Shown: positions 1 through 56,046 of the stretch, in pieces | Layout of the letters: each line of letters opens with the position of its first letter | How positions within the stretch are numbered: position 1 is the first letter of the stretch | The notes under the pieces: generated by a model | Databases searched by the model: none | Told to the model about the DNA's origin: nothing | The model's input: only the letters and a program-made list of their open reading frames with translations | Translations under genes and position numbers: made by a program | NCBI GenBank assembly: GCA_038496445.1 | Contig: JALMLS010000421.1 | Span: forward strand, 166,424-230,423 | Direction: 5' to 3' | Length of the DNA: 64,000 nucleotides | Source of the DNA: Trichosphaerium sp. ATCC 40318 | Lineage: Eukaryota > Protista > Tubulinea

Positions 1-901
1 AAGTAAACAGTAAGCACTTTGAAACATCGCAGAAAAAAAAATAGGTTTCGAAAAAAGTATGTCTCGCCGTTTCTCGTACTTTTTTAATCTTCTCATTAAC
101 CTTAATAGCTTTAATAAACTCTTTTTTAGTATTACCAACAGATGCATCACAGCTTAATACAATAGGATAATACTTATACTCATTTCTTGAGACACATTTA
201 ATTTTATACTCCCTCATTGTAGCACACCACTTCTTTATCAAGTGCATCATCTTGTACCCTTCTCTTGATGTTTTAAAATGACCCTTTACACCATCAAAAT
301 CTTGTTGTATTAAGAAATTACTAGACGAGACAATCAAAGGAGGTGTCCATAGATCAAATACCTCAGTATCTCTAAAACCAAAATTAATACAATATCGACA
401 AACTTGACGTCAAGTTTTCATTGAATATAGGACAATTGTGTTTTAAACAAAGGCGGGAAATATGAATTTGTAATTATGTACGTTGTTGGAGGTGGATTAA
501 AAGAGAAACCGAAATCCTCAGTGAAGTCTATAATGCAATACTTCCAAATCAACGGTAAACGCATTCTGTCATCGGTGTGTATCATTTTAGGTGCTTTTTG
601 ATACTCTGGAAGCACTGAGAAGTCAAAATCAGCTTTTAGGCGTTTATAGAATACAAACTCTACTCCTTCGCTAAACGCTCTACTAACAGCGGATACGCTA
701 GCAGTCCCACACAATGGCAAATAGGAGCATATAAGCGTTAAAAGCTCTGGAGTGTCTAAAACGCGTATAACTGACGAATCCATTGTATTTTTGGTTTGTT
801 TTGGCGATTCCACTGTTTAGGGCGATTGAAGAAAACAAGTTTTTGGAAGGCAAAACGCTTTCTGGCCAAATACTTCTTCATTAGATTATTCACGTACTCA
901 T
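1..901 (-). CDS. F-box protein with NuiA-like C-terminal region (paralog of 53359..54780); 3' end runs off the window
   Basis: The N-terminus RVLDTPELLTLICSYLP...VSAVSRAF is F-box-like. The next exon (~80-370) reads WTPPLIVSSSNFLIQQ..GHFKTSREGYK..CVSRNEYKYYPIVLSCDASV, which aligns with the 53884-54190 exon. The start is uncertain: ATG at 901 via a GTACGT intron, or ATG at 783. Confidence 0.7.
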
Positions 902-3673: not shown

Positions 3674-4444
3674 ATGAGCACCACAAAACAAACTACCTCG
3701 CGTGGTAAGAGTAAAAGGAACAGCGAAAAGACAAAACAAGCAAATAGACTAAAACTACTGACGTTACCGCCAGAAATCATCGTCTACATCGTTAGAAAGC
3801 TTAAAAAAGATCGATTCGCCATGGCTCAGAGTTGTCGTAGTCTAGCAGACATTATACACGAGTATGTAGGCTATCATACAGTCGTAGCTTCAAATGATAA
3901 CGATTTATGGCGTATAGCAGGTCATAAAGGGCTATTGAAGCATTCTATAATAAAGTGCTGTAAAGACGTTACAGATATCGGTTTATACTATATATCGGGA
4001 GCACAGGATGTAGATCTATCGCGTACATCCGATAAAGTAACGGAAAACGGTATTGCAAAGCTTGCAGGCGTACATAGAATCAATCTTACCAGAAAAGAAT
4101 CAGCAACTGATAAAGCACTTAAAGCTCTCGCAGGTGTTCATACCATTAACCTAACACGTTGCAATTCCTTCACTGATGTAGGTATGGAAGCAATAGCAGG
4201 TGTACATACAATATACTTAAGCTGTTCACGTGCTATTTCCGATGTCGGGCTAAGAGCTCTCGCTGGTGTACACACGATTAGCTTGTATTATTGTCCTAAG
4301 GTATCTGATTTTGGTGTTAAAGCTTTGGTTGGCGTACACACTATAAACCTTGCATATTGTAAAAGAGTTACTGATGAGGGTGTTAATGCTCTTAAAGGTG
4401 TTCATAGAATTAAACTTAATGGTTCTGGTGCAACATGTCAATAA
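3674..4444 (+). CDS. Intronless F-box + leucine-rich repeat protein
   Basis: F-box LLTLPPEIIVYIVRKL..FAMAQSCRSL, followed by ~7 repeats of LAGVHTINLxxCxxVTDxGxxA in one uninterrupted 256-aa ORF. Confidence 0.88.
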   Translation: MSTTKQTTSRGKSKRNSEKTKQANRLKLLTLPPEIIVYIVRKLKKDRFAMAQSCRSLADIIHEYVGYHTVVASNDNDLWRIAGHKGLLKHSIIKCCKDVTDIGLYYISGAQDVDLSRTSDKVTENGIAKLAGVHRINLTRKESATDKALKALAGVHTINLTRCNSFTDVGMEAIAGVHTIYLSCSRAISDVGLRALAGVHTISLYYCPKVSDFGVKALVGVHTINLAYCKRVTDEGVNALKGVHRIKLNGSGATCQ

Positions 4445-12040: not shown

Positions 12041-12892
12041 TTAGCACAGGCATGTTACTCCCAGCCTAAGATCAATTAAAAGAACTCCAGCAAGTGCTTT
12101 TACACCTTCATCTGTCACTTGAGTACCACGAAGATCAATAGTATGAACTCCAGCCAATGCCTTTATGCCCTCATCAGTAACTTCACAGCAACCATAAAGA
12201 TTAATTGTATGAACTCCAGCTAATGCTTTGATACCTTCATCTGTCACGCTAGTATAGCTAAGGTCAATAGAATACACTCCGGCTAATGCTTTGATGCCTT
12301 TGTCTGTCACTTGAGTATCACGAAGATCAATTGTATGAACTCCAGCCAATGCCTTTATGCCCTCATCGGTAACTTTACAACAACCATAAAGAGTAATAGT
12401 ATGAACTCCAGCTAATGCTTTGATACCTTTATCTGTCACTAGAGTTGACCTAAGATCAATGGTATGAACTCCAGCTAATGCTTTAATACCTTTATCTGTC
12501 ACTCGAGTTGATCTAAGATCAATAGTATGAACGCCTGCCAACGCCTTGAAAAAGCTAGTACTCATATTGTCACAATAAATCTGAATAGAAAAAGCCCCGT
12601 GAAGATATTTTTTAAACTCCTTTCCTGTCATCTTGTAAAAAATATCAACTTTGCACGTTTTTAAATGAAAAGGACACTTTCGTTTATGATACTCAATGAG
12701 TTGCTTCTTGTTGCTTATTGAAATGACGAATTTTCTGGGTGTATAACCCAAACAATCGGTAATGATACACGAAAATACAGAACATACTGCCCTCTTGTAG
12801 GGTATGCACGCTCGAGGCATAAAACTAAGGATCAAAACCCATATTTCTCGCGGTATTTGATCAATTATCCCAGCAGTACCGTGTGTTTCCAT
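12041..12892 (-). CDS. Intronless F-box + leucine-rich repeat protein (same repeat type as 3674..4444)
   Basis: F-box IDQIPREIWVLILSFMP..RAVCSVF, then 7-8 repeats of LAGVHTIDLRxTxVTDxGIKA. Confidence 0.9.
   Translation of the reverse strand: METHGTAGIIDQIPREIWVLILSFMPRACIPYKRAVCSVFSCIITDCLGYTPRKFVISISNKKQLIEYHKRKCPFHLKTCKVDIFYKMTGKEFKKYLHGAFSIQIYCDNMSTSFFKALAGVHTIDLRSTRVTDKGIKALAGVHTIDLRSTLVTDKGIKALAGVHTITLYGCCKVTDEGIKALAGVHTIDLRDTQVTDKGIKALAGVYSIDLSYTSVTDEGIKALAGVHTINLYGCCEVTDEGIKALAGVHTIDLRGTQVTDEGVKALAGVLLIDLRLGVTCLC
12070..12545 (-). repeat. 63/66-bp coding tandem repeat (LRR units)
   Basis: Near-identical units of 21 or 22 codons (on the + strand, tatgaactccagc.aatgc.tt.at.cc). Confidence 0.9.
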
Positions 12893-53358: not shown

Positions 53359-54780
53359 TCATGTCCAAACAATTCCAGTAATAAGTCCACCAATGATAGT
53401 AGGTGAAAGCTTACAACAAATAAACGCAGGAAATGGATTGCATGCATCTCCACCAATGCTTATACCAACAACAGGGTTATTTGCAATGCTTCCTAAAACT
53501 AAAGTAAGAATGACTTTCCAAAATGTAACAACAAACTTTGAAAGAAGTTGCAGCAAAAAACGCCAGTGCTACCCCAAAAGTGTAATCTTCACAGTTTTTA
53601 AATTGCTGCAAAATGGGCGTAGTAAATACTCAAAGCTTTTTGTGGAACATGATGGTAGAATAAACAGCGCAATAGAACTCATAGAAAATCAGGTTTCTCA
53701 GAAAAAAAAACATCATCCATGTACAACGAACCTAACATTTTGTGAACCTTCTCAATAATCTCTGGTTTTTTTGCGTCTTCTTCCTCTAAAGATTTATCTG
53801 GATCAAGGATTGTATAGTCATCTATTATTGCCTACAGAAATGCGTTAACTTAATGATACCAAAAACACGTGCTTTTTTAGCGTTTTTTTTTATGTACATT
53901 TTTGAGTTGATCTATGACACCTACAGCATCAACAAAACTTGCTGGATCATTAACCACGGATGGATCACACGTTGTTATAAAAGGGTGGAATCTATGATCA
54001 CTCTCAGAAGTGCAATCGACTATACAGTGTTTATGTAGTAAATCAGATGCTTCTTTAACTGTTTTTAGTGCCTTGTAAGCATCTAAGGCACTCTTGAAAT
54101 GCTTGGCAGGGTTATGTAAGTCATCTCCTTCATGTATAAAAAACTTGCAATTAGATACAGTTATAGGTGTAGTGAATATAGGATAACCTCTAAACAAGTA
54201 TTAACTCTAAACAACCAATTCCGAGAAAATAGGAAAAAAAACTATCAATCAATCTAGAACTACTAACATGAGTATACAGTAGGCTGTACAGTTAAAACTA
54301 TCATTATGAAGAATTTAAGAACCAAAATTTGTTCACGTTATTGAGTGAAACGATGTGAAGTAAGAGTTCCGTTAAGTGAATTTCAAAAAAAAAAACCAAC
54401 GTACTCAATATCTCCTTCATAGTCATCAGGTAGGAAATAAGGATAAGTCTCGAACTTCCAAACTTGAGCTAACAGTGTTTCATCATTAGATCCATAGTTG
54501 ATTTCTGTTCGTTTTTGGAATGATGTCATTGGGTTCATGTCAAAATCGTTTGACAGATGTTTTCTCCAAATCAAATCACTTTTTGATATTTTTTCTTGGT
54601 ATTTAGAAACCCTAGACATTGCGCTATGGCTGGATACAGGTAAATATCCCCATATGTTCACTAGAAGCTCAGGTAGACCTAATACTTGTTTTGAAGCTGT
54701 CAAAGTATTTCCAGTACTGTATGAGGTCAGAAGGAGGATTTAAAGTAAATTTCGTACGACCGTTTCCTTTTAGGTGGCAT
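53359..54780 (-). CDS. F-box protein with a NuiA (nuclease A inhibitor)-like domain and an N-terminal NLS
   Basis: Spliced product: MPPKRKRSTG..VLGLPELLVNIWGYLP..MSRVSK..DLIW (F-box) ... LKTVKEASDLL..TSESDHRFHPF ... SIANNPVVGISIGGDACNPFPAFICCKLSPTIIGGLITGIVWT*. Confidence 0.8.
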
Positions 54781-55034: not shown

Positions 55035-56046
55035 TTACATTACAATACAACTTTTTTTTATCTGGAGGTATTATCTGCCCTCTATTTGCCAACACCAGTA
55101 TGGCTATTTCATCAAAAGCTACAATCAAACATTAAAATACACTCTTTTGTTGTACTTGCTCATTCAAAAGGGTGCAAATTGTAAACGTGATGATAAGACA
55201 AACATCAATGTGGTTTCTGTAAGCTCAACACTTTGCCTTCATTGACGTTGTCTTTCATCGTGTTCACACTTAAACCTTGTCCTAGAATATATGTTTAGAT
55301 AACACTTACCACGTTTTACAGCTTCTCCTGTGAGAGCACTACATTCCACATACGAATGTGCCTGTTTTATACCTGGTAAGTAAATCTGAAATAAAACTAC
55401 AAAAGACTTACACCTATTTTTATTGCCATCTTTTGAGCTTCTTCTTTGGTAATACAATCATATGGACTTCCATCAGGTTTAAGTGTTGTTCTCAAATCCA
55501 TTTTAAGACCTGCAAGAACAATAGGTACATCATTACAATGATGCGCCAGTTCAGGTTTCCACTAAACTCAAACGTCTAATTCTTCCATAATCCTCGACAC
55601 TACCTGTATCCCATGTACCTTTTAACATGCAAGTCAATTCAAATCAGAGAAAGCAAAAAGGGGAGAACTCAACAAAGTCAAAGACGAACCTAGAGTCACA
55701 CGCTTATCCAAAATAGTTATAGGATTGCTTATCACAAAAGTCAGTGCATCAGCAAAAAAATGCAAGAGTCTGAACTCTATTAGTTTACCTGTGGTTGTCT
55801 ATAACCGTTGGTGCTATATTAATAAGCATTTAAAACGTTTAAACTTGAAAATAGATTGTACTGTAATCTGTTGGGAAAGAATCGTTTATAAAACGTATCA
55901 GTAAGCATGTTTTGCCTTAAACCGAGCGAAATAAGCCTTTAACAATGATAAATTACTCCCCGTTGCAACTTACCAACTGCTCCGTCTCCGAGAACCACTA
56001 CTTTAGCGAAATGAATCGCTGATAAACCATGTGCTTGACGTGCCAT
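55035..56046 (-). pseudogene. Rho/Rac-family small GTPase with an internal deletion and a non-canonical G3
   Basis: KVVVLGDGAVGKTCLL, PTVIDN, WDTGSVEDY.RIRRLS, WKPEL..VPIVLAGLKMDLR, YVECSALTG and CAAX CIVM. The segment between RLS and WKPEL is absent, so the frame reaches TGA. Confidence 0.82.

Follow-up and report, generated by a model that had tools for sequence, protein, structure and literature searches.

A spliced F-box protein gene with a putative NuiA-like C-terminal domain in Trichosphaerium sp. ATCC 40318

The window analyzed in this study is a stretch of 64,000 nucleotides (nt) of DNA from the protist Trichosphaerium sp. ATCC 40318 (assembly GCA_038496445.1, contig JALMLS010000421.1, positions 166,424 to 230,423 of the forward strand), and all positions given here are counted within it. 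Its G+C content is approximately 35%, and its short open reading frames (ORFs) are numerous and interrupted by introns, which marks the genome as eukaryotic. On the minus strand, from 54780 to 53359, five exons were spliced into an open coding sequence (CDS) of 861 nt that encodes 286 residues. An earlier note on this DNA, made by reading the letters alone, had described here an F-box protein joined to a domain like NuiA, the inhibitor of the nuclease NucA. Its coordinates agree exactly with the CDS, and the peptides that it quoted, MPPKRKR, LKTVKEASDLL, TSESDHRFHPF, IEKVHKMLGSIANNPVVGISIGG and, directly before the stop codon, FICCKLSPTIIGGLITGIVWT, are all present in the 286-residue product. 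The four introns (41, 215, 66, and 239 nt) are all of the GT..AG type, and three of the donors read GTAC. The parts of the gene are given below, together with the support from contigs of two runs of the same organism (X1 and X2) and from P0001, a database protein of another protist.

54758..54780, minus strand: exon 1, the ATG and MPPKRKR(S), a basic patch like a classical nuclear localization signal; predicted, and the least certain part of the model
54717..54757, minus strand: intron 1 (41 nt, GTACGA..CAG); predicted only, spanned by no contig
54405..54716, minus strand: exon 2, F-box and linker; a continuous ORF, with its 3' end spliced to exon 3 in the contig of X2 record 6
54557..54673, minus strand: F-box core, model residues 23-61 (LGLPELLVNIWGYLP...VSK...IWRKHL); matched by Pfam F-box-like
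54190..54404, minus strand: intron 2 (215 nt); confirmed by the joint 54189/54405 in an X2 contig
53898..54189, minus strand: exon 3, linker and N-terminal half of the putative NuiA-like domain; covered by contigs, matched to P0001 by phmmer
53997..54008, minus strand: SESD motif, residues 173-176, with Glu174 aligned to Glu24 of NuiA
53832..53897, minus strand: intron 3 (66 nt); confirmed by a joint in X1 and X2 contigs
53732..53831, minus strand: exon 4, putative strand, acidic loop and helix (AIIDDYTILDPDKSLEEEDAKKPEIIEKVHKML); covered by contigs, aligned to NuiA by hhalign
53493..53731, minus strand: intron 4 (239 nt); confirmed by a joint in X1 and X2 contigs
53359..53492, minus strand: exon 5 with the stop codon, C-terminal strands of the putative NuiA-like domain; 51% identical to the C-terminus of P0001
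53362..53388, minus strand: GLITGIVWT-COOH, which fits the NuiA C-terminal pattern G..T..[VI].T

Exon 1 is needed in the model to supply a start codon: exon 2 offers no in-frame ATG upstream of its F-box, and unspliced read-through ends at a stop after 17 codons. X1 and X2 come from one sample; neither run is recorded as RNA, and the library type is unrecorded. Their contigs are 99-100% identical to the gene and skip exactly 54190-54404, 53832-53897, and 53493-53731. Because three GT..AG introns have been removed precisely, the contigs are most simply complementary DNA. The contig of X2 record 6 (355 nt) contains the 3'-terminal 38 nt of exon 2 followed by exons 3 and 4, and the contig of X1 record 1 (396 nt) contains exons 3, 4, and 5 and the 3' untranslated region, down to 53291. 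Exon 2 is an uninterrupted ORF holding the F-box; together with the joints of the contigs, this places the F-box and the GLITGIVWT exon in one mRNA. The gene is real, expressed, and spliced as one unit. The splicing that had been done by hand was thus borne out for introns 2, 3, and 4, but intron 1 and the PPKRKR exon, which carries the putative nuclear localization signal, are covered by no X1 or X2 contig, and this weighs against the nuclear part of the interpretation.

The relatives of the gene were few. When 1.84 billion representative proteins were searched exhaustively with exon 3 by phmmer of the HMMER package, a single true relative was found, P0001 (E = 1.5e-10), and the remaining library matches were LysM-repeat and other repeat-rich proteins (P0002 and P0005). 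Residues 10-50 of exon 3 (54039-54161, CKFFIHEGDDLHNPAKHFKSALDAYKALK) do resemble the first half of a LysM repeat. We took this likeness as chance because the library E of approximately 3e-5 sums four to five repeats and the Pfam LysM profile does not score exon 3. The source of P0001 is L001, a Joint Genome Institute (JGI) contig of 962 nt, which is a transcript of another protist and has no introns. In L001, an F-box ORF lies upstream of the 178-residue ORF of P0001, and a one-base frame slip in a T run (226-231) lies between them, so the database protein represents only the C-terminal half. When the slip was bridged with an X, L001 was 38% identical to the window protein and collinear with it through every exon junction. 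A word-based search with P0001 returned only itself, and a scan of metagenome contigs for relatives found none; very few members of the family are thus present in public data. One more copy lies in the window itself:

77..783, minus strand: partial paralog, an F-box exon and an exon-3 homolog, truncated by the window start (tblastn E = 2e-8 and 7e-12)

The F-box exon of this paralog is 31% identical to that of the main gene and its exon-3 homolog is 28% identical, and the two genes have the same exon order, intron positions, and intron phases.

These relatives also bear on whether the exon of the F-box and those of the C-terminal domain could come from different genes. The F-box core at 54557-54673 and exon 1 lie outside the X1 and X2 contigs, and the whole CDS is spanned by no single contig, so a wrong gene model would be imaginable on the contigs of the window gene. 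However, these contigs join the 3' end of exon 2 to exons 3 and 4 and join exons 3, 4, and 5, L001 carries both parts on one molecule apart from its single-base T-run indel, and the exon order is the same in the paralog. We therefore hold a wrong gene model to be highly improbable. The earlier note had named separate genes as the finding that would count against it, and the F-box and the C-terminal domain were found in one transcript both for the window gene and for L001.

The contigs also contained minor variants of the transcript. One 60-nt contig, at a depth of 4.4 compared with 16 for the unspliced form, showed an additional intron:

53992..54059, minus strand: minor cryptic GT..AG intron of 68 nt in exon 3

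Its removal takes out the SESD motif and puts the rest of the CDS out of frame; we regard it as probable splicing noise. At 53392, one X2 contig has G for A on the plus strand, which is a synonymous change in exon 5 (ATT to ATC, Ile); the contig represents an allele or else a close paralog. The contig of X2 record 7 (160 nt) is just 90% alike over the 51 nt of 53901-53951, with unlike flanks; it was probably transcribed from a further paralog at a different genomic site.

F-box proteins (PF00646 / PF12937) carry a motif of approximately 40 residues of the form LPxE-hh-x-I-hxxL, and it was recognized in all three homologs. Pfam F-box-like matched the window protein with an E of 7e-4, L001 with an E of 3e-5, and the paralog with an E of 5e-3, in each case at the same profile positions (6-33/44). 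Each single score is just below the curated cut-off; L001, for example, scored 24.1 bits where 24.3 are required. When a profile of the three N-terminal sequences was searched against 177,635 PDB sequences, the F-box of FBXO31 was the best match (E = 0.0075), and an F-box/WD40 protein was the second. The F-box that had been proposed for this gene is thus established at the sequence level.

For the C-terminal domain, the comparison was made with a NuiA family set of 126 members, which included divergent ones from Gloeothece, Kovacikia, and Deinococcus. The reference nuiA was that of Nostoc PCC 7120, on plasmid pCC7120alpha (L002:28843-29247), where it adjoins nucA. The Anabaena NuiA sequence that the earlier note had given was correct, as the annotated nuiA contains LEQLKQASDGLLFMSESEYPFEVF and ends with NLAGISTKVVET. 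In the Pfam, structure, and ESM Atlas tests, P0001 or single exons served as stand-ins for the window protein, and the spliced window protein was used in scripts only.

The window domain has the size and the extreme C-terminal position of NuiA from Nostoc/Anabaena PCC 7120 (PF07924; 1J57, 2O3B), and it shares with it the strings KxASD..L, SES[DE]xx[FY], an acidic loop, NPxV, and the final G..T..[VI].T-COOH. At the N-terminal side, KEASDLL...TSESDHRFHPF in the window protein and LSESDYPFLPF in P0001 correspond to the N-terminal helix of NuiA and its motif G-L-L-x-x-S-E-S-[DE]-Y-P-F. The pattern [SN]E[ST][DE] is present in 125/126 NuiA-family sequences and reads SESD in the window protein. At the C-terminal side, the terminal pattern G..T..[VILA].T is present in 124/126 sequences, and the window protein ends with GLITGIVWT and P0001 with GFITGFIWT. 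We estimated from residue frequencies, and not from a database count, that such a C-terminal pattern is expected in approximately 1 in 40,000 proteins; the N-terminal motif detected by Pfam plays no part in this estimate. The distance from the motif Glu to the C-terminus is 112 residues in the window protein, as in NuiA, and 107-112 residues across the NuiA family; in P0001, which has an acidic insertion, it is 128 residues.

The only Pfam match of P0001 was PF07924 NuiA, with an E of 0.08-0.1 and 13.4-13.7 bits (gathering cut-off 22.1). When the alignment of the three family sequences was compared with the NuiA alignment by hhalign, the local alignment was collinear over 90 columns (P = 2e-4, Prob 46%), and the global alignment covered 128 columns with 21% identity (P = 4.5e-4). 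The real score was matched by 1/400 column-shuffled controls, in local and global mode alike. After the N-terminal motif was removed, the remainder was still in register with NuiA, and 13/300 shuffles were equal. Exon 4 was aligned by hhalign to VVDIDSFF..PQDWYEDEEN..KFQKLLEVIK of NuiA. A blind MAFFT alignment of 24 sequences aligned the family and NuiA from end to end, with SE, G, T, and the terminal T nearly invariant. In the ESM Atlas, the nearest named clusters of P0001 were all NuiA or NuiA_2 (score 0.89-0.90, 191-204 of 256 features shared). An Atlas query with exon 3 alone was uninformative.

We believe, on these likenesses of sequence, that the C-terminal domain probably descends from the NuiA family. 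The homology that had been claimed is supported by several weak but convergent tests (Pfam, hhalign, Atlas, and motif spacing), but none of them reaches a curated threshold, and a number of results weigh against it. No NuiA test passes a curated or conventional threshold. The exon pieces of the window gene gave no Pfam match for the C-terminal domain, and NCBIfam was likewise blank. Searches of PDB sequences by phmmer and with the family profile did not return NuiA, the best matches being GANP and an amino-acid transporter, neither of them significant, and phmmer with P0001 against PDB was blank. When the Deinococcus-type NuiA subgroup alone was compared by hhalign, there was no signal. The window domain is only approximately 21% identical to NuiA. 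Furthermore, 125/126 NuiA-family members have a penultimate Glu and end with ET, whereas the window protein and P0001 end with WT, and the tail of the window protein is much more hydrophobic, with a 19-residue Kyte-Doolittle maximum of 1.75 compared with 0.74 in NuiA.

The structure predictions were too weak to speak for or against the link. AlphaFold with the four-row family alignment gave a predicted local distance difference test (pLDDT) score of 38.6, and a second run with 20 NuiA sequences added, which is not independent of the question, gave 56.3. Foldseek placed the NuiA chain 2o3b_B at the top of 350,542 chains, but weakly (E = 0.22, template modeling score 0.30-0.33) and with a model whose alignment contained NuiA. 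VIA-align against 48,161 representatives returned generic two-layer alpha/beta proteins and no NuiA. In the comparison with the alpha/beta sandwich fold of NuiA (1J57, 2O3B chain B), of the kind that the earlier note had proposed, 2o3b_B ranks first in Foldseek, but the models are of low confidence and VIA-align does not recover it.

The results that weigh against the link would suit an F-box protein with a lineage-specific C-terminal fold unrelated to NuiA, with motifs shared by coincidence and with substrates that are not linked to nucleases. The NuiA statistics are all below threshold, reverse hidden Markov model searches miss NuiA, and the structure searches give no specific NuiA match. 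The tiny size of the family, with one outside homolog in the 1.84 billion representatives, makes its profiles weak. Against an unrelated fold stands the coincidence of separate features, namely the N-terminal motif that Pfam detects database-wide, the rare G..T..[VI].T-COOH pattern, and the 112-residue spacing between them, together with the collinear alignment through the middle of the domain and the NuiA neighbors found by the language model. We think such a coincidental likeness unlikely.

The hydrophobic C-terminus (AFICCKLSPTIIGGLITGIVWT) could also be a tail anchor, which would make the product a membrane-tethered F-box protein whose likeness to NuiA is incidental. The Kyte-Doolittle maximum falls at residues 266-284, with just two residues beyond it, the best PDB match of the family profile is the transmembrane stretch of the amino-acid transporter (E = 0.56), and the tail contains a small-residue motif, GG..TG. 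However, the segment is broken by Lys, Ser, and Pro, so that the uninterrupted apolar run is just 13 residues, and both AlphaFold runs, with low confidence, fold it as a beta-hairpin. The terminal pattern and its spacing are also what homology to NuiA predicts. We regard a tail anchor as distinctly improbable.

In F-box proteins, the substrate-recognition module sits C-terminal of the F-box. The simplest reading of the position of the C-terminal domain is therefore a receptor of a Skp1-cullin-F-box (SCF) ligase for a nuclease of the NucA/EndoG type. In this study, we consider it fairly likely that the product is an F-box protein and candidate SCF substrate receptor whose C-terminal ~140 residues (~145-286) form a divergent member of the NuiA family. 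The NuiA-like domain would bind the nuclease at its active site and so inhibit it, and the ligase would ubiquitinate the captured enzyme. The PPKRKR N-terminus, which lies on the predicted exon 1, suggests that this might take place in the nucleus. That the protein is nuclear, assembles into an SCF ligase, binds a nuclease, and has it degraded is our inference from sequence likeness.

The residues through which NuiA acts were compared in the MAFFT alignment. Glu24 of NuiA, in its SESE motif, reportedly reaches the active site of NucA, and Asp75-Trp76 is said to be the second contact, as reported by Ghosh et al. in 2007. The corresponding residues are as follows:

Glu24 of NuiA (SESE motif): Glu174 in the window protein, kept; kept in P0001
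C-terminal Thr of NuiA: Thr286 in the window protein, kept; kept in P0001
Asp75-Trp76 of NuiA: Asp-Lys in the window protein; Asp-Tyr in P0001

The window protein and P0001 thus retain both residues that meet the active site of NucA, namely the Glu of the motif and the terminal Thr. Studies have shown that the C-terminal Thr of NuiA coordinates the catalytic Mg2+ of NucA, displacing a water and forming a metal bridge (PMC2790893; PMC5587815).

A NuiA-derived domain need not still act on nucleases, and, as with SUKH in FBXO3, it might instead have become a general module for recognizing other protein substrates. The loss of the penultimate Glu would agree with this, as would the Lys that the window protein has at the position of Trp76, a residue of the reported second contact site. 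The paralog at 77..783 reads SRNE where the main gene has SESD, so that the Glu directed at the active site is lost, which also speaks against a nuclease target, and SUKH proteins of eukaryotes have a wide range of unrelated binding partners (PMC3113570). In the window protein and P0001, on the other hand, the motif Glu and the C-terminal Thr have both been kept despite an overall identity of 38%. We do not expect that contact with nucleases has been given up, and rate such a module as an improbable outcome. A further point against a nuclease inhibitor is that tblastn of NucA found no NucA-like gene in the window, although adjacency is not expected in a eukaryote.

Beyond an SCF receptor for a nuclease, we speculated on a nuclear anti-nuclease sentinel. 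In it, a bacterial antitoxin-like part would have supplied a eukaryotic "inhibit and destroy" immunity against nucleases, which would since have diversified as a small family of paralogs. This picture is speculative and on balance rather doubtful. Its targets might be EndoG escaped from mitochondria or homing nucleases of the His-Cys-box type.

Studies have shown that an F-box can be fused to a bacterial immunity domain. FBXO3 and SKIP16 join an F-box to SUKH, and filamentous fungi have done so independently with SUKH-4 (Zhang, Iyer & Aravind 2011, PMC3113570). In these proteins, as is proposed for the window protein, an N-terminal F-box is followed by a domain of bacterial immunity to nuclease toxins at the substrate-recognition position (PMC3113570); in contrast, they carry SUKH (SMI1/KNR4) as the immunity domain, and its fold is unrelated. 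Neither PMC3113570 nor the 2012 polymorphic-toxin survey mentions NuiA, and no eukaryotic F-box-NuiA fusion was found in the literature searched. The use of an immunity fold as an F-box receptor is therefore not new in itself; what would be new is a different immunity fold in the same evolutionary move.

The window gene also differs from the other proteins with which it can be compared. Bacterial nuiA adjoins nucA, whereas the window domain is fused to an F-box in an intron-bearing eukaryotic gene that has no nuclease gene beside it. Drosophila EndoGI has an unrelated helical-repeat fold, binds with two domains per EndoG dimer, carries no known F-box, and is known to act by inhibition only, with no degradation. 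Eukaryotic NuiA/NuiA_2 (PF23151) proteins exist, mostly in fungi according to the Atlas clusters, and are among the nearest neighbors of P0001, but P0001 has no PF23151 match in Pfam.

If both the link to NuiA and the nuclease target are true, this gene would be the second independent case, after SUKH/FBXO3, of a bacterial nuclease-immunity domain recruited as a eukaryotic ubiquitin-ligase receptor. It would be the first such case in which the mechanism of the ancestral inhibitor, the C-terminal Thr on the catalytic metal, is known atomically, and this makes the hypothesis directly testable. Eukaryotes have few known means of guarding their DNA against nucleases of the EndoG type or of mobile elements, and a degradative route would then be added to them. 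If the link to NuiA fails, an ordinary lineage-specific F-box protein remains.

Other features of the window were noted in passing:

55239-55501, minus strand: neighboring ORF fragments, YVECSALTGEAVK and ITKEEAQKMAIKIGV, that resemble the C-terminal region of a small GTPase of the Rho/Rac type; Pfam gave no match
12044-12892, minus strand: ORF with leucine-rich repeats (LRR_6)
3674-4441, plus strand: second ORF with leucine-rich repeats (LRR_6), with an additional sub-threshold F-box-like match (E = 1.5e-4)

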